From Lepidodermella squamata (Eukaryota; Animalia; Gastrotricha), in contig JBLDXI010000038.1 of the NCBI GenBank assembly GCA_047495785.1, positions 372,001-436,000 of the forward strand: DNA of 64,000 nt. The letters are read 5' to 3'. Under the pieces are notes generated by a model. The model was not told the DNA's origin. It saw only the letters and a program-made list of their open reading frames with translations, and made no database searches. The first letter of the stretch is position 1, and the number at the start of each line of letters is the position of its first letter. This document shows positions 4,507-39,200 of this stretch, piece by piece. Made by a program: the position numbers and the translations under genes.

Positions 4507-7500
4507 ATGGCAACTGAACTGTTGAAACCAACGGATCTAACAAAAGATGCCCTACTCAAAAACTGTGGTGATGAAGCAAACCGAACTACTTACCTGCATT
4601 CCGTCGTGTATAGCTTAGTGATTGGTCAAAGTAATATCGATGAATTCGTTCAAGATTTCAAGGAGCTAATCGTAAGCTTTACATCATGACTATGATAATT
4701 CTACTGAATTTACGATTTTCTGTAGATGAGCAATCCTAATGTCGCGGCAACTTTTCTCGACTGTATTTGGCTCGTTGAGAATGAGTTGGTGCTCCTGCCG
4801 TCTCAGAACGCGTCGAACAAGCCGCAACAAGAGCGACTTGCCGCGTTGGTCCGAAGTCTTTCCCAAATCCTGCCCAGTTTAGTGCGAGAACGGCTCGACC
4901 CTGAGCTGCTCGAATCGTCGAAACTCATCCCGTCGAAAGACATGTTTTCACAGAAAATCGTCAGAGTCAAAACTCGTCTCTTCTATAAACAGCAGAAGTT
5001 CAATCTACTTCGCGAGGAGTCGGAGGGCTACTCGAAGTTGATCGCCGAGTTGTCGAACCCCGTTTCGGGTAGCACCAAAGAAGGCTCGATCAGATCTGCA
5101 AATTACCTCCGCTCTCTCATCGGTTGCTTCGGCCTCGATCCCAACCGAGTCATCGACCTAGTTCTCGAGTCATTTGTACTCGACCTCGATCACACAGACT
5201 ACTTCATCGAGTTGTTGAGGTCGATGAGTAATGACCGAGCGTCGGTTAGTCAAATTCTGGGGCGAAAATTCGCCACATCCCCAGCCGAAGCGTTACCATC
5301 GTTAGCCACCGCTTCCGCCCGCTTATTGTGCCACGATTTGGTCGACATGGAGATTTTGTACGCCCACCTCACGCCAAGTGATGCTGATATCACAGCGAGG
5401 GCTCAAACCGACCTCAACGAGGCGAAGCTGAAAGCTGCCAACTTGAATGTCATCGTTCTGGGCGGCGGCAAGTCCGATGAAGATGCGGCTGGTAAAGCTG
5501 AAAAGGACAAAACAAACTCATCAGCTGCTGAATTTCCGTCGTTCTCTTCAAATCAGAAACTGCTGTTGATCCACGCCTTGTTGCGTGACGGCGCGTGGTC
5601 TGAGGCGAAACGGCTACTAGACCACCTAACGCCAACTTTCGCGATGGCTGAGCGAGCTGTTTCGCTTGCAATGTCGCGATACCTATCAGCAATGATCGCA
5701 CCCCTATTCGAGCAGAGTACCGGTTTGCCGGAGCAGCTACTCGCCAACCTCAATTCGTCCACCTCAAAAGCCGCTGAAGACCTGCCGCAGTTGGATGAAA
5801 CTCGCGTTTGCCGGTCGTTTGAAGACATGGTGAAAGTCGGTTTTTTCCCAATCCTCTACTACATCGGCCCTTACCTGTCGCGCGATTCGATTTTAATGAT
5901 TCGTCTGCTGCGTATTTTCAACGCATTCATTCAAACAATCACTCCTACTAATTTGAAGCCTGATTCGTGGCAGGCCAAGTTCTATTTCGCGATGGTCAGT
6001 GCGTTTGACGACGTGATCCTACCATCTCTGAGCCTCATGCCGTCGAATTGCGTCGTTTCCGAACACATCTGGCTCGTTTTGAAACAAATGCCGTATTTAC
6101 ATCGCTACTCGCTGTATGGATCTTGGTTATCAGATTCGTACGCAAATATCGCTCCATTGATCCTGATGCGGGTAGCTGTGACTGAAAAGTGCCGTTACTC
6201 CGTGAAGCGAGTGACTAAGGACAATTTCAAACAAATCGGCCGACAGTTGGGCAAGTTGAGTCATGCCAACCCTGGTCCGGTTATCGACCATCTACTCGCC
6301 ACTGTTCAGAAATTCGACAATTTCATCGGCCCGCTGATCGATTCGCTACGTTACATGACGCAAATGTCGTTCGATGTCATGACGTACTGCGTAATGAGGA
6401 CGTTGGCTATTGCCGGGTCTGACCAAACCGAAGGAGCCGCTGCGTTGTGTTCATTCACCGGCCAGCTAGTCCGTCGGTACAACTGCGAAATCGCGGGTTT
6501 GTTGCAATTAGTCACCAACCAGCTTAAAGTCGGCACTTGCGAGGTCGATTTGGCGTTGCTTCGTGAAATCGTGCAAAAAATGGCTGGTATCGAGCCGTTT
6601 GAAGACGCGACCGATGACCAGATGGAGGCGGCGATGGGCGGCGATCTCTTGAAGAGCGAACTCGGCAACCTCGTCCAGCTTAAAGCCCTCAAAAGACCGG
6701 CGCAACGGCTGCGTGACTCCCTGGCTGAGGCGAGTCTCGCCACTCCGGTGTTCTTACTTGTGGCGAAGCACCGCCCGACAGCGATCTACAAGTCACCGAT
6801 GACTACCCACCTTAAAACTCTGGGCAAAATGTTCGACGAGTGCCAAGACACATTGCTGCAATACGGCACTTTCCTCGCTAATGTTTTGACAACGGCTGAG
6901 TACGCAACCGCTGTGCCTAGTATCAACAGTCTATTGTCAGAGTACAAAGTACCCCCAGATTCAGCGTTTTTCATGGCTAGACCTGTTCTGGCCGCTAAAA
7001 TCGGTGATCAGACAAAGGTTTTGACGAAGCAGCTTCAAACCAACCACAAGGAAGGCGCTAAGCCTGATAAAGAAAGTATTGAGAAGACGAAAACTCAGGC
7101 TTTCAGCGAGGCGGCTCGAGCTGTTTTCGGCGAATTGGCGAACACGATTCGATCGGTAACTGCGAATGGCGCGCCTTGTTTCCCCGCCGGTCTGTGGGAA
7201 GAACTCAGCTGTGAGTTGTATGTCGTTTTCTGGACGCTGGAAATCAGCGATATCTACGTGCCTGAGGGTGCTTACGATCGGTTGGAGCAGACGCTGCGGT
7301 CTCAACTGAAAACCGCTGAGGCCGAGGTTCAGGCGGCATCCGCTGGCAACAACTCGTCGAGCACTGTGAAGGCGAAGGCGAAAGAGCGAGATCGCTTGAA
7401 GAGTTCCATCGACCGAGTCAATGAGGAGCGGAATCGACAGCGCGAACACGTCGCACGGGTCATGGCTTGCTTGAAGGAAATGAAGGACCGCTTCTTCCCG

Positions 7501-31779: not shown

Positions 31780-33504
31780 TGGTTTAAGCACAACTCTAAT
31801 ATAAATCGAATGGGAAATACATTGTTTCAGAATTGAGCAAATAAATTGCAAATGAGTTGTTTCTAATTAAACCATCAGCGATAAAATAAAAAGAATGAAC
31901 CGCTATAAACCAATCACAAATTAACCCCTCCATCCTTCGAAACCCAATTCGCCTCTTGAAAACGCGTTTTTTTATAAATGCTGTTCAAGAACATGGATAC
32001 AGATTAGAAAGCTATTCCCTCTTTATCCTCAGTCAAAAATAGTACACTGTACACATACATAATACTATTTCCATAACAGAATTCGTCTTCTCATGGGAAA
32101 CAGCACTGCAATTATAACAAGACGCCGGTGAATGAGATTCGAAGACGCACCAAGTATAAATGTCAGCGGTCAGCGGTAGCGGCAAACATTCTAAGACGGC
32201 ACTTCAGACATTTCGTTATCGCGAACAAGTAAATACCGGGATCATCAATCAGACTGGATGAATGTTGGAAAAAGCGCTGCTTCTGTGAGAAAGCCTATGA
32301 GAAGGCTCTGAGGGAGAGTTGGCGAACAGAAAAAACAGAAAAAACGGGCACCTCACTTTCACCTGAGAATAGGGGAGACATCTCATAAAATTACTCAACA
32401 ATTTGTCATGTGTTAGAAGTAGGCTGTAAGACAAATGACTTGAACTTGGTATGCCAACGCTACAAGATTACAAAGTTAGCAATAAAGAAAGCGTAGCATT
32501 CAACATATGAACAAGTGGAGCTATGGCGGTAGTTTAGGGTGCCAGATGCCAGATCCTCATTGGTTTTCACCGGGAAAATGGACCCAGACCTCACTGGCGC
32601 CTTCTAACCCACAAGTCATATAAGCACGATAAGAATCGACAAAACAGAAAATACCGAACTCTGCTTTGCACCACCAGCAGAGTTTCATTTCATGAATGAA
32701 CAATAAATGAATGTAATGAGTCATTAAAAGCAATGAAAAATCAATGATTCAATAAGGTATTGCGCTAAGTTTGGCCGCAAGATAATCAAATCAACAGGTG
32801 AAATTGAAATTCAGGACATACCGCCAAATCGCGCGAAATCTATGCAAATTCAAATTTTAATTTTCATATAATTATTCAACCAATTAATATGTTATCGAAG
32901 CCATTTTTAAATGATCGACAAAAATATTGGTGAAAAACTTAATCGGGGCGCTGAGTTTTTTGGCGCCGAAATATTTTTGAACTTTCTTGGAAAAACGTTG
33001 TATTATTGGTTTGGTTGAAGAGGTCAGGGTCCCGTCCTTTTCACTTGCCCTATGCAGTTGCGTATATTAAAAGCAAACAAATGGTGCTGGAAAGGCTCAA
33101 GAGCTCAAAGAAAAGAAAATGGCCATCGGTACGTAGCGGGCGCTGAACGTTGAAGACTGGAAGCTAGAAGTTGGAAGAGTGACCCACCGTATCCTCGGTC
33201 GGCATTAAGAAGAAAGAAGATCGTCAAAGATCCGATCAAGATACGGAGATCAAGTTCCATTATTTAAGCTATAACTATGCATGCGCTGATCACTTAGCGA
33301 TCACTCACTCTGAACATATTTCGCTGGGCAAAATGTTCAGTTGTGGTTGATGCAACAGCCGCGGTGGCTTAAGTAATCGAGAAGACCGTACTATTATAAG
33401 TATATTTTCTGCAGTCCTTTGATAACGAATCGGAAGACGGAACCCTTTTCTTTAGTCGTTTTCGTATTATTATATTTCCTCTGCTTAGGTTGTTTTGATA
33501 ATTA

Positions 33505-33782
33505 ATGGTTAATGTCACCGAAGGTGCACTTGTTGAGTGGTAATTTTATTATTGGCACAATTGTAATGTTTGATTGATTTTAATATTTCAAATCGTAGCG
33601 ATCCTGCAATAAAGCAGTTTCTTCTCCATCTTGACGATACCCTCGCACTTGGCAAACGATTTGTGATCGAAGATCTCGACTCTACGCATCTGTTTGTTCA
33701 GCCCGACGTAGTAGCTAGTTTGGAAGTCAAAATTGACGAATTCTTGGAAAAGCTTACCTTTCCACTCGGAATCAAAGAATAA
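33505..33782 (+). CDS. GTF2H5: TFIIH subunit p8 / TTD-A / Tfb5
   Basis: Exons 33505-33539 and 33599-33782 give [25 protein letters not shown]...FVIEDLDSTHLFV. Confidence 0.95.
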
Positions 33783-33793
33783 CTCGTCTAAAA

Positions 33794-35929
33794 ATGAATC
33801 ATGAAGTGACTCCTGAAGAAGAATGGACTCGGGTTTCGCAGGATGTTTTAGTGTTATCGTGTGAGCATTTCGCCTCATGGGCTCTCAACGCCTTTGTTTC
33901 AAACTGGAAAGTTGATAAAACGGGGACAAATGTTGCACATAGACTTTGTACCGAATTGCTGATGTTGTCTCCGGCTCCCGTTGAAAATATTCCTGCTGGT
34001 ATGTATATGCACTTGCCCCGTGTTGAATATATACCGCAACATTTTTGTTAAATTAGATGCTGACTTTTCTCGATTGTGTCTTTACGCCACCTCCGAATTG
34101 GTTTATCACTATTCGTCAGTGCTAGATTTCCAAAGCTCCGATTCCAGTCAACAGGATGCAAATAGCGAGCCAAGTGATGAGGATTTAGGAAATTTACTAT
34201 CGTTCGGCCGCATATTGATGCGTCATTACTCATTGCAAAATAACCCTGCGAATGTGGAGAAGGTCAAATCCATTGTAAATGACCTGTGTGCGACATACTT
34301 GAAAATTTACAATGAGAAAGACTTCGTCGCTCAAATGCGCAAGCTTTGGTCTCAATTTTCGCAATCGAAGTTTGGAGACTTCAACAAAATGAAGTCGAGA
34401 CGTCCTAATTTGTCGAAAGTTCGGGAGAACCTAGAAAGCATTGCATCGACAGCGCTATCGGCTGTTTCCAACCCGCTCTTGTTTAACATGCTCACTCGTA
34501 CTCACAACTTGCTAATTGAGAACGAGATGGGGAGCGCAGCGGCTGGAGTTGCTAAAAAACCAGCCGATATTGAAAGCACAGTTGACCCCAATCCGACTGC
34601 TCCCGTAGTCTCAGCGATCGACGTTGCATCTGCTCTGCCGGTTGATTCGAAAGATATCGCTAAAATTCCCAATCTGTCTCATGAACAGTTATCCAAACTC
34701 CACATCACTTTTTCATCTGACAAAAAGCCCTTGCCTAATGCAATTCCTGATCCTGATAAACAATGGCTCTCTTCGGCCCGAGAATATTTCTCAAAAAACC
34801 CGGTAAATAGAGCAATTCAGTTTGAAGCACCGACCCCTCCTTCTGAAGTTCTTGATGCGATAAGCCCGGAAAGACCGCCGAAGCCGTATGCCTTACAGAT
34901 TCCATGTCACTCCGTATTAACGTTATTTAATTTCAGAACTCGCTCCAAAGTTGTTGACATAATGGAGAGAAAACCGATGAAAAAGCGCCCAGCTGATCAA
35001 TTAGAAGTGTTACAGCCGTCGTCTCGTGATCAGTCTCCCCGATCTAAAGTCGTACGGCCGGAACCTGTCTCGGCAGGTAAAAACACGTCAATGTCGCCGT
35101 CATTCTCCGAGTGCCTGGTTTCGGAAACCCCGGAAAAAGCAGCAAGCAAACAGTAAATTTACTCAAGATTTCGATATGTTATTGTGATATTATTTGTTTT
35201 AGACCCAAAACGGCCTTGGCTACAGTAACGACACCGACAAATGAAACTAATGCCTGCTTGCGAGCTCTTGTTAGGGGCGTTACGCGAAGGCTGAACGCCG
35301 ATAAGCCCCCTGAAAGCCATCAACAACATGTTCCCCCTGCTCAGGAAGCCCCTGCTAAAAAACCCATTCCTGCTGCTGTGGTACCCGCCCAACTCTCAAA
35401 CATTCCGTCCACTTCAGCTTACTTCCAAGTGCCGGCGCCGCCGCGAGTGAGACCGACTCAGCAGAAGTCAAAGGAATTGGCTGCTGTTGCTCAGCATGGA
35501 TCTGCTGACAATCGCAGCAAAACTGCTAGTAATGCTAGCGAACAAATTACTGCGCAATCTGAGAAATCGGTCGAGCCTAACATTACTCGCTGTGACCCCA
35601 GCACACCGAGCGTGGCCGTCCGTCCTACCCTTAAAGAACGCGTTGGCTGCCCTGTTCCCTCGAGTGATAGCGACAGTGATGACGATGCAGTTCACGTTTC
35701 GGATGAAAGTGACCATGATGATTTGCAGGCCAGCCAGAGACACCGGAAAAAACGTCGACCTTGGACTACCGAGGAATATCGAGCTGTTGTACAGGGCGTG
35801 AAGCGGTTCGGCGAAGGCAAATGGCGTGAAATTCAGCTGTATTATCCTTGTCTGAAAAGTAGGACCAATGTTGGTGTTAAGGATGCCTATCGCAACGTTA
35901 TGCGAAACCCTCAGCTTCTCAAGCAGTAA
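33794..35929 (+). CDS. Telomeric repeat-binding factor (TRF1/2)-like protein with C-terminal telobox Myb
   Basis: C-terminal 'RRPWTTEEYRAVVQGVKRFGEGKWREIQLYYP..RTNVGVKDAYRN'; helical N-terminal region and disordered linker; introns 33999-34056, ~34886-34936, 35153-35202. Confidence 0.7.
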
Positions 35930-36213
35930 ACTTGCCGTTTTCATTTATCCAATCCCAGTTGGTATATAGTAATTATCACTCTCTGTACCGCATTCCAATT
36001 GTACCTATATCCGGTATCGGGGTTGTTGATGCTTCGCTCAAAGCTCATGACGGTGTTGATTGTCATTCTTAAATATGCTGTGTACATGACACTGCTCGTA
36101 TTATCTTTTAATTAAATTTGAGTTTGATCATAATTTCATACGATTTTAACCATTAGGTGTTGTTTTAATTTTGAACTACGCATCCTGCATACAGTCGTAA
36201 GCCTGCCCCTCCA

Positions 36214-39200
36214 ATGTTCGGCGGCGGAAAGGCATGGTTCGGTTCTAAATCGCTATGGAAGCCGAAAAATATTCACTCGACAGATTATTTGAAGTAAGTG
36301 GTTAACCTTTGATTTGCAAAATATTATTAATCGGTTTACCAATTATAGATATTTGCACGGCGTGTTAAGTAAAAATGCTGTTGTCACGGAGCAGAACCAG
36401 CAATTGCTCATTGAAGTTTGGCGGATCATCTCCGAAATTCTTATTTGGGGTGATCAAAATGACTCAAAAGTATTCGAGTATGTAACCTTGATAATTACGC
36501 CTGTTGCACCAGCTTAAACTGTTCATTGCAGCTTCTTCCTTGAAAAAAATATGCTCACGTTCTACATATCGTATATTCGGCAACCGTCAGCTCGATTCAT
36601 TATTGTTCAACTTCTTCAAACCTTGAATATTCTTTTCGAAAATACTGCACAAGAAACTTCAATATGTTAGTGACTGTCGAGCGAAGTTTGCATTGTTGCA
36701 TTTTTGTCTTATTCAGATTTTCTTCTTTCAAACAACCATGTGAACGAGATAATCACCAGCGAATTCGACTTTGCGGATGAAGAAGTAATGGCGTACTACA
36801 TTTCTTTGATGAAAACACTGTCGTTGAAGCTGAACTCGCATACAATTCACTTTTTCTTCAATGAACACACTCGAAATTTCCCTTTACTCACCGAGGCGCT
36901 GAAATTCGATTCGCACCCCGAGTCCATGGTTCGCATTGCCGCGCGAACGATTACTTTGAACGTTTTCCGCGTGAGAAATCGCGCCGTGATACGTTTTGTC
37001 TGCGACCGGGTCGCTCCAGCCCAGTTCTCCCTGTTCGCCTACAACGTGAGCAGGCAGACTGTAGCTATGGATGCGTGTTTGAGTCAAGCCCAGGCGCTGC
37101 AGCTTCAACACGGCCAGCAGCAACAATCCGGACCGTCGACTGGCATTTCTTCGTTGTCTCGCGCGAGAGAACGGCTTCAAGATCACGCCGCCGAACATCT
37201 AGATTTGCTGCATTACGCGGCTGATGTTATGCAACTGGAGATCGAAGAGCTGAATGCTGTAATTTCGCCGATTCTACTCTCCCGGCTCCTACTGCCGGTC
37301 TACTTGCCTTCACTATTGTCATCGACGTCGGTCGCTGTCGATCAGCTCGTCGAAAATATGCCTCGCATCTCGCCGCTGCTTTCACTCTACCTGTTGTCGC
37401 ACTTTTTCATTGTTTTCAAGGGGCACGCTCCTCTACTTGTCAAACTTCTCAATGTAATCGCAAATGGCAATGCGGCGACTAATGGGAATATAATTCGACA
37501 GCTCGGTCGGTTGTGTTCCCGCGCGCCCGAGTCGTTGAACGACGCACTGCGGCGCAATGCAATTGTTTCACCAACGACTTCGACAGCCCCGGCTTCGTCT
37601 GAGCCAGCCGTCCAACACCAGCCGTTGCCGCAGTCGGACAGCGCTTCCGAAATTTCGGCGGCCGCTAGCGAGTTCCTCGGCGAAATGGGCACCAATCAAA
37701 CCGATGACGAAAAGCTTTCCGAATTCACCCAATCGTTCGGAGGACGGTTAGTCCTTTTTCTATCTCGAATACCTAATTCATTTGATCAGGATAACTAATA
37801 AGATTTTTCTTGAAATTCCTCATTAATTGCGGGAAATTGTTTTTCGTTGGCTGTAAGTGCCATTTAAAACTTCCAACCAGGAAAGCTAATTCGTTCGGGA
37901 ATTTGATAAATTTCTCGATATTCCAAATTTGGGTACTTGTCGATTGCGTTTGAGCACGCAATTGACTAGCCTTATTTTATCATATTGTCCAAATTGTTCT
38001 GTCCAAAAGGAGGCCGTTACATATTGACTTTAAGGACCAAGCATGCTCACCATAAGATGAGGGCTCCGGCACTAGATTTTTCACGCCTTCCATAGTATCT
38101 GAAGCAGTATCGACTAAGAAAAAAGGTTCCATGACGCTTAGACTTAGTTCCGGAAATTGAATCTTGGTGGTGGAAATATTTCGACCCTGTAGAAGGATTT
38201 ACTCACTTTTTTCATTTTTCAGCGTTTACCTCACTGCAATTATGCAAATTCTGGATTCGATCGACAGCGGTGGAGATAACCAACCTTGCGATCGCGAGTC
38301 GGTTTTCGCGCTCATTTTTCTGTTATCACTCGTGAACAATGCAGCGCTGTCGCGTGATTTGCTGGGCAGTCTTGGGCTTAATTCCAGCACAGCACCCGTC
38401 AAAACTGAGTACAACCACTTTCTAATCGACAAACTTATCACCATACTCACATATGCCGCTAAATCTGGTAAGCTTTTTTCCGGATAATTTGACGCTTGAT
38501 TGATGAGTTATTGTTATTCAGATACGAAAATAAGACCTGTTTCTGTAACCTTGTCAGCGGAATTGTTGAAGAGTCAGGTCCTGGCTAATTTCATCCCGTC
38601 GGAAGGCATGGTGAAATCTGACTCGGTATTTTCGACCTCGTCTCCCCCGCCCTCGACGTCGCCATTCAGAGCTAGCTGCCTGAGTGACCACGACCTGGCG
38701 CGGATAGAAAGCGCCCGCGAAGAAAGCACCCTGGTTCTGCGGTCGTTTTTCAAAAGCGAAGACACATTTGTCGACGCTTTCGAAGACGAGTACAACCACT
38801 TCCACGACCGGCGGCGCGTTGATATCGAACGCGTTCTCGGAGATACCAATCTTCTGCTATCACCGGCAGTTTCAACCCCCCTCAGCGGTGTCGATTTCGC
38901 ACATCGACTACCCTGCGGCGAGGCTGAACGCGCCCGGTTGGCTATGCGGGTATTTTTCACGCTTCGAGCGGTTTCTCTCCAGTTGAGGGGCGAGGCTGAA
39001 ACTCAGCTGCCCCTTTTCAAACTCGATAATCTTGTGCATCCAGGCGATGCTCTTGACCTAAGTGAGTTGAATTGAGGACCAGCTTGTAATTCTGAAATGA
39101 ATCATTTTTCGATAGACAACAGCGACTTGTTAGCATGTACGGTAGCGATCGCTAATGATAAGTAAGTTCATTTGAACTTGTTAAGTTGGGATGATTCAGT

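Follow-up and report, generated by a model that had tools for sequence, protein, structure and literature searches.

A Tfb5 gene of the gastrotrich Lepidodermella squamata appears to share a mature mRNA, which may be read by leaky scanning, with a gene for a TRF-type Myb protein

The stretch of DNA analyzed here (hereafter the window) comprises 64,000 nucleotides (nt) of the gastrotrich Lepidodermella squamata (GenBank assembly GCA_047495785.1, contig JBLDXI010000038.1, positions 372,001 to 436,000 of the forward strand), and coordinates given below without another label are positions within it. On its plus strand lies a gene for Tfb5 (TFIIH p8/TTDA/GTF2H5), which is followed after 11 nt by a gene for a protein with a TRF-type Myb domain at its C-terminus. 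Very probably the Tfb5 mRNA also includes the second open reading frame (ORF) in full, and we favor, with moderate confidence, the reading that it is a true bicistronic mRNA decoded by leaky scanning. In the mechanism that we propose, Tfb5 (72 amino acids, aa) and the 658-aa TRF-type Myb protein would be the two cistrons of one mature mRNA, which would begin at a trans-spliced leader joined at the AG at 33487-88, have four introns removed, and be polyadenylated near 36130. Of the scanning 40S subunits, some would initiate on the Tfb5 AUG with its pyrimidine at -3. The remainder would bypass both this codon and a weak out-of-frame AUG 7 nt further on, continue through approximately 290 nt that contain no AUG, and initiate at 33794, where the AUG has an A at -3. 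Reinitiation after a 13-codon overlapping ORF, or after Tfb5 itself, may contribute to the output of the second cistron.

The evidence for a shared message comes from RNA assembled into contigs (runs X1 and X3) rather than from single reads, and run X1 can be recognized as RNA since its contigs are spliced. One X1 contig of 2,446 nt, at a depth of 112, consists of a 20-nt loose end followed by 33487-33538, 33598-33997, 34056-34885, 34937-35152, and 35203-36130, and holds both ORFs with all four introns removed. Reading the contig ends with a "+1" cut places these introns at 33540-33598, 33999-34056, 34886-34936, and 35153-35202, all of them GT..AG. Run X3, which belongs to a second study, confirms the last two introns and has its 3' end at 36129, as compared to 36130 in X1. 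The X1 depth table is reproduced exactly when every intron is given zero cover (e.g., 112.3 x 62/121 = 57.5 for the bin of the Tfb5 intron). Zero X1 cover is likewise found over the 84 nt that separate the 3' end (36130) from the ATG of the next gene, CLEC16A (36214), and the X1 RNA path across the Tfb5/Myb junction is unbroken. Because the introns and the 84-nt gap are uncovered, the junction-spanning RNA is neither DNA carry-over nor a rare precursor of a kind that would retain introns, and both DNA contamination and unspliced precursor were rejected as its source. The transcript ends 14 nt after an ATTAAA at 36111, the only AATAAA or ATTAAA between 33783, just past the Tfb5 stop, and 36200, which means that a Tfb5 mRNA ending at a canonical signal must include the whole second ORF. 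It is the unbroken mature path across the junction, together with the lack of an earlier canonical poly(A) signal, that makes such a message so probable. The features of the gene pair are as follows, with the support for each in parentheses.

33480-33488, plus strand: splice acceptor tctgcttAG, joined to a 20-nt non-genomic, leader-like sequence (loose end of the X1 contig)
33489-33504, plus strand: 5' untranslated region (UTR), 16 nt, from the acceptor to the Tfb5 AUG (X1 contig)
33505-33539, plus strand: Tfb5 exon 1, start context taattaATGgt with T at -3 and G at +4 (joint 33539/33599, GT..AG)
33512-33514, plus strand: the only other ATG before 33794, in the +1 frame and in the weak context ttaATGt, opening a 13-codon ORF that ends at 33612 (sequence)
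33540-33598, plus strand: Tfb5 intron, 59 nt, GT..AG (X1 contig)
33599-33782, plus strand: Tfb5 exon 2, with the stop TAA at 33780-82 (Pfam PF06331, translation)
33783-33793, plus strand: inter-ORF spacer ctcgtctaaaa, without AG, ATG, or poly(A) hexamer
33794-33998, plus strand: exon 1 of the downstream gene, start context ctaaaaATGaa with A at -3 (X1 contig; N-terminus conserved in a relative from the first residues)
34057-34885, plus strand: exon 2 of the downstream gene, a predicted all-helical N-terminal region (X1 contig; without detectable relatives outside the lineage)
34937-35152, plus strand: exon 3 of the downstream gene (joints in X1 and X3)
35203-35929, plus strand: exon 4 of the downstream gene, coding part, with TAA at 35927-29 (X1 contig, translation)
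35753-35899, plus strand: C-terminal TRF-type (telobox-like) Myb domain (Pfam PF00249, E=4.9e-7)
36111-36130, plus strand: ATTAAA poly(A) signal and 3' end of the RNA contigs (X1 ends at 36130, X3 at 36129)

At the junction itself, the Tfb5 ORF that begins with the ATG at 33505 closes with the TAA at 33780-33782, the 11-nt spacer ctcgtctaaaa occupies 33783-33793, and the second ORF, whose stop ends at 35929, opens with the ATG at 33794-33796. The 11-nt distance given in the first-pass annotation of this DNA is thus borne out by the sequence. That annotation also stated that the junction has no AG and no poly(A) signal, which is true of the spacer, where no AG, ATG, AATAAA, or ATTAAA occurs; AGs are present just upstream, however, within the Tfb5 coding sequence (CDS), at 33776-77 (caaAG, 3 nt before the stop), 33700-01, 33710-11, and 33717-18. 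In the same way, the claim that there is no room for a trans-splice site applies to the spacer, but a leader could be joined at an AG within the Tfb5 CDS, a case that is weighed below. A classical leader-resolved operon junction between the two genes was considered and rejected for want of room and signals, because the spacers (11 nt here and 1 nt in the relative described next) have no AG and the window has no AATAAA or ATTAAA until 36111.

The relative was found by a word search with Tfb5 exon 2 in ENA metagenome assemblies, which returned a 76%-identical ORF on contigs L001-L003, and these contigs are collinear with the window over approximately 13 kb. Gene order is the same in both: the minus strand carries a LIM gene and one further gene, after which the plus strand carries Tfb5, the Myb gene, and CLEC16A, so that Tfb5 stands head-to-head with its upstream neighbor and is therefore the first gene of its unit. 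At the junction in L001 the Tfb5 stop TAA (5668-70) is separated by a single t from the Myb-gene ATG (5672), giving TAAtATG, and the downstream protein aligns with its counterpart from the first residues (MNHEVTPEEEW vs. MGSNHQLSEEDEW). The two downstream proteins are only 34% identical over the first exon and 23% over the central part, and reach 51% in the region of the Myb domain. Tfb5 is under purifying selection, with 74-76% aa identity to the relative and identities of 0.77, 0.89, and 0.45 at the three codon positions, and its third codon positions agree at 24 of the 49 identical residues, which is near synonymous saturation. Since a relative near saturation at synonymous sites keeps both genes with a 1-nt spacer, the layout of the Tfb5 and Myb genes is confirmed and is not due to chance. 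The deep divergence of the proteins and of the Tfb5 third positions points to two old relatives in which the tight junction has been kept, not merely inherited. The frame of the second ORF relative to Tfb5 is +2 in the window and +1 in the relative, and a conserved readthrough or frameshift fusion of both ORFs was rejected on account of this difference. Further junction-bearing relatives were sought in a scan of JGI metagenomes, which yielded only the Tfb5 of other eukaryotes. A third relative of the Myb exon (P0004/L010, Logan) lies on a 1.2-kb contig that ends short of the junction, and the contigs of more distant animals reached via CLEC16A (L011-L013) contain neither gene.

The start codons of the two ORFs fit what leaky scanning predicts, a weak context first and a stronger one second. 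The position at -3 is T at the Tfb5 AUG in both species (taattaATGg in the window, ttcATGg in L001) and A at the downstream AUG in both (ctaaaaATGa and actaatATGg, respectively). Per 100 nt, AUG occurs 0.46-0.48 times in Tfb5 vs. 1.8-1.9 times in the downstream CDS in both species. Each species has a single other AUG before the second ORF, set in a weak context and followed by a short ORF; the one in L001 lies at 5531 and opens a 5-codon ORF. In plain shuffles this gives P=0.10 and 0.07, and the AUG depletion in Tfb5 is suggestive and not significant. The AT-rich contigs L004/L005, on the other hand, have Tfb5 ORFs of comparable size with 5-6 internal ATGs. Neither this species nor the relative has an internal methionine in Tfb5, and the "DELM" of Tfb5 in L006-L009 reads "DEFL" here (IDEFLEKL), which would be consistent with selection against AUGs in the first cistron.

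Several points weigh against a bicistronic mRNA read in this way. The terms weak and strong, as applied to the start contexts, follow the general eukaryotic rule of a purine at -3, not a consensus of this genome, and when the protein is held fixed and synonymous codons are resampled, 3.1 (window) and 2.0 (L001) other AUGs are expected before the second ORF against the one observed, and AUG avoidance has P=0.072 and 0.26 (combined 0.09). A contig over two genes does not prove one molecule, so the single bicistronic mRNA put forward in the first-pass annotation is backed by a spliced contig with both ORFs, by the lack of an earlier poly(A) signal, and by the kept tight junction, but not established by the contigs at the level of single molecules. 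We infer both the presence of the two ORFs on such molecules and the translation of the second one from them. Trans-splicing, moreover, occurs in this organism, the evidence here being one leader-like end, and the Tfb5 CDS contains a pyrimidine-rich stretch with an AG 16 nt before the second AUG in the window (cttacctttccactcggaatcaaAG) and 11 nt before it in L001 (ctcgcctatAG). An assembler would clip the short leader tip at an internal acceptor of this kind, so the lack of a second loose end means little.

These last points lead to the alternative that survives best, although we consider it unlikely, namely that the long RNA serves Tfb5 only and that the Myb protein is made mainly from a second mRNA whose leader is joined at an AG within the Tfb5 CDS. 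The candidate acceptors are the AGs at 33776-77 and at 33700-01/33710-11/33717-18, and splicing at any of them destroys the Tfb5 message on that precursor. That trans-splicing works at this locus follows from the 5' end of the gene pair itself, where the 20-nt loose end GCGAATTTGATTTGTGTCTA abuts the acceptor AG at 33487-88 in the X1 contig; the 3' end of this leader-like sequence reads ...GTGTCTAAG. No copy of the 20-mer with 3 or fewer mismatches occurs in the 64-kb window, and an upstream cis exon was rejected on this ground, which leaves a sequence that is either trans-spliced or more than 33 kb away. The loose end has the look of a trans-spliced leader, and within the limited literature searched we found no paper linking gastrotrichs and spliced leaders. 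A second mRNA of this kind would be hidden by contig assembly, and the low AUG count of Tfb5 exon 2 suits a 5' UTR derived from that exon equally well. The first-pass annotation had named reinitiation or leaky scanning as the means of translation; the start-codon contexts fit the latter, but a separate leader-spliced Myb mRNA fits the contigs too. Other observations speak against this second mRNA. The proximal AG in the window has A at -3 (caaAG), whereas the five verified acceptors all have T or C there, the best-looking acceptor, ttgttcAG (33700-01), reads CAA in the relative, and an AG is expected by chance approximately every 17 nt. Besides the one at 33487 the contigs report no loose end, a negative to be read with the clipping of such tips in mind, and each such splice wastes one Tfb5 message.

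A second alternative, which seems to us improbable as the main route, retains the bicistronic mRNA and has the second ORF translated mainly by termination-reinitiation, with the restart 11 nt (or 1 nt in the relative) past the Tfb5 stop. For eukaryotic reinitiation 72 codons is long for efficient restart, and the Tfb5 ORF has this length. The closeness of stop and start that is kept in both species speaks for such a restart, being needed by coupled termination-reinitiation (reviewed in PMC10275272, PMC5972666) and not by leaky scanning, yet a compact genome may be reason enough for the tight spacing. Neither species has a TGGGA (TURBS-type) motif within the final 100 nt of Tfb5, and shuffled sequences fold as well as the junction RNA does (z = +0.94 and +0.80). 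An element acting like an internal ribosome entry site, or a calicivirus-type (TURBS) reinitiation element, was rejected on these two grounds, which also speak against reinitiation as the main route. Weak-then-strong start contexts are what leaky scanning predicts, and in green algae the context of the first ORF shifts the ratio of both products, which argues for scanning (PMC11892635). The weakest alternative, a separate promoter and cap site within the Tfb5 gene that would give an independent Myb mRNA from genes that merely overlap, is compatible with the contig evidence and would find a workable 5' UTR in the AUG-poor exon 2, but it hardly seems credible given that the whole Tfb5 gene measures 278 nt under strong coding constraint (74-76% aa vs. 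45% third-position identity), that no contig starts within it, and that the arrangement would need keeping in both species.

For the proteins themselves, the database searches, family scans, fold prediction, and exhaustive HMMER run were made exon by exon (with exons 1 and 2 unjoined), and the joined proteins were used for translation, counting, and local tblastn against fetched loci. Tfb5 exon 2 matches the Pfam family PF06331 (Tfb5) with E=2.3e-19 and 69.6 bits vs. a cut-off of 23.5, and the spliced product of 72 aa is 58% identical to the TFB5 of Hydra. We take the Tfb5 ORF, judging from these matches and its constraint, to encode a real protein and not to be a regulatory upstream ORF (uORF).

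The downstream gene has four exons and a CDS of 1,977 nt. Among PDB sequences, the eleven best matches to its Myb domain all come from the corresponding domains of TRF1 or TRF2 (E from 1e-7 to 4e-6), and the order of PDB matches runs from TRF1/TRF2 (approximately 1e-7) to plant telomere-binding proteins and c-Myb (c-Myb at 1e-5). The region N-terminal to the Myb domain, in these single-exon queries, has no Pfam match even at E=10 (TRF included), no Atlas neighbor, and no PDB profile match, and in the exhaustive HMMER search, which covered 1.84 billion representatives, the relative's own exon and two low-complexity proteins were the only hits. An AlphaFold model of the part encoded by exon 2 is all-helical with a pLDDT of 43.7, which is unusable for a fold search. 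Like vertebrate TRF1 and TRF2 (TERF1/TERF2), the protein combines a long, predicted helical region at its N-terminus with one Myb domain at its C-terminus that is preceded by an acidic stretch; unlike them, it has no TRFH domain detectable here by Pfam, PDB profile, Atlas, fold, or exhaustive HMMER, and its helix-3 motif is VKDAYR where the aligned TRF1 chain has LKDRWR. The first-pass annotation had called this a TRF-like telomere protein. The first half of that label agrees with the best matches of the Myb domain and seems justified for this domain and for the overall layout, but it does not extend to a TRFH domain or to telomere function, as no TRFH or other N-terminal relative was detected, and the word telomere would derive from the TRF1/TRF2 matches of the Myb domain. 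Two further motifs are strongly conserved between the diverged species, SPSFSECLV at the end of the exon before last (35090-35150; L001:6666-6723) and ALAT..TPTNE.N...RALVRG.T.R.N at the start of the last exon (35207-35310; L001:6786-6881). Lying outside the Myb domain and without a match to anything named, they look like docking motifs for partner proteins.

Bicistronic messages with Tfb5 as the first cistron are known from two other groups. In arthropods Tfb5/p8 is the 5' cistron of a transcript shared with Swc6 (Dmp18/Znhit1, CG31917) (PMC7013941, PMC9514664), so the Drosophila precedent with a different partner that the first-pass annotation cited is a real one, and the pair has been listed as a conserved uORF-main ORF pair (PMC2276209). 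As here, a small Tfb5 cistron is followed by one for a larger protein of chromatin or genome maintenance, and the pair is conserved throughout a whole animal group, but the arthropod partner is a zinc-finger HIT subunit of SWR1/SRCAP, the phylum is different, and there is no leader trans-splicing. In green algae REX1-S, a Tfb5 homologue, is the upstream ORF of a bicistron with REX1-B that is conserved across chlorophytes (PMC7896298), and the inter-ORF distance of REX1S_REX1B is 14 nt in Auxenochlorella (PMC7896298, PMC11892635). Leaky scanning of algal bicistrons has been shown in vivo via the ORF1 context and added AUGs (PMC11892635). The likeness to our pair extends to Tfb5 in first place and a very short inter-ORF, and algal bicistrons have a weak ORF1 context and few internal AUGs (PMC7896298, PMC11892635); the differences are the partner REX1-B, the plant lineage, the lack of spliced-leader trans-splicing, and the basis for translation, which is experimental in the algae, whereas we infer it here.

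The mechanism that we favor is thus not new in itself. The first cistron is shared with the known cases, and the partner, the phylum, and the leader-capped 5' end set this one apart. If the reading is correct, this would be a third independent lineage in which Tfb5 shares its messenger with a genome-maintenance protein, the first with a telomere-type Myb partner. Tfb5 would be lost here from an annotation that retains only the longest ORF of a transcript, as REX1-S was in Chlamydomonas (PMC7896298). We offer more tentatively the idea that eukaryotes have repeatedly recruited Tfb5 as a first cistron, on at least three or four independent occasions and always together with a nuclear nucleic-acid factor. 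The cases on which we would rest this tentative idea are Swc6 in arthropods, REX1-B in green algae, the Myb protein of TRF type described above, and perhaps an SNRNP25-like protein with a ubiquitin fold from the AT-rich animal of contigs L004/L005. If true, Tfb5 would be predisposed by its small size and low required dose to work as an upstream ORF that is itself translated and controls how much of its partner is made, and in this species the supply of a telomere-type DNA-binding protein would be tied to that of a TFIIH stabilizer on a single leader-capped mRNA.

The last of these cases comes from two related AT-rich contigs (GC 28-31%) of eukaryotes in JGI metagenomes, in which a tight pair (L005:606-1228, L004:571-1193) again has Tfb5, here intronless, in first place. 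A conserved 132-aa ORF begins 5 nt (L005) or 8 nt (L004) past the Tfb5 stop and contains a PF18036 Ubiquitin_4 domain (E of approximately 1e-18), and its product may be SNRNP25-like. Leaky scanning looks unlikely for this pair because of the 5-6 internal ATGs of its Tfb5, and a leader-type junction or reinitiation would be needed.

Behind the Myb gene the window takes on a different appearance. The RNA of the Myb gene ends at approximately 36130, the CLEC16A ATG lies 84 nt on at 36214, and acceptor-like tacAG and gtaAG occur at approximately 36190-36200; the X1 contig of CLEC16A starts at 36215 without a leader. CLEC16A also follows the Myb gene in the relative (L001: stop at 7265, ATG at approximately 7445). 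The spliced-leader operons of nematodes, tunicates, flatworms, and rotifers likewise consist of same-strand packed genes with a common leader, and the Myb-CLEC16A junction has that look. The Tfb5/Myb junction is unlike them, as an operon junction needs an upstream poly(A) signal and cleavage site and then an acceptor, and the 11-nt and 1-nt spacers offer neither. The Myb-CLEC16A gap may represent an operon junction of the leader-resolved type just past the putative bicistron; if both readings are true, a true bicistron and possibly a leader-resolved operon would coexist at neighboring junctions in an animal with leader trans-splicing.

Scans of the window for other elements gave no Rfam match in the 64 kb and, for bacterial promoters and terminators, results at chance level that are irrelevant for a eukaryote. 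Upstream of the Tfb5 acceptor, at 33160-33340, X1 contigs of low depth (4-5) show three "opposite strands" joints (33160/33273, 33223/33337, and 33228/33313) in a region where only short 11-nt inverted repeats were found, and these joints may be artefacts of assembly or reflect bidirectional transcription from the promoter of the head-to-head genes.

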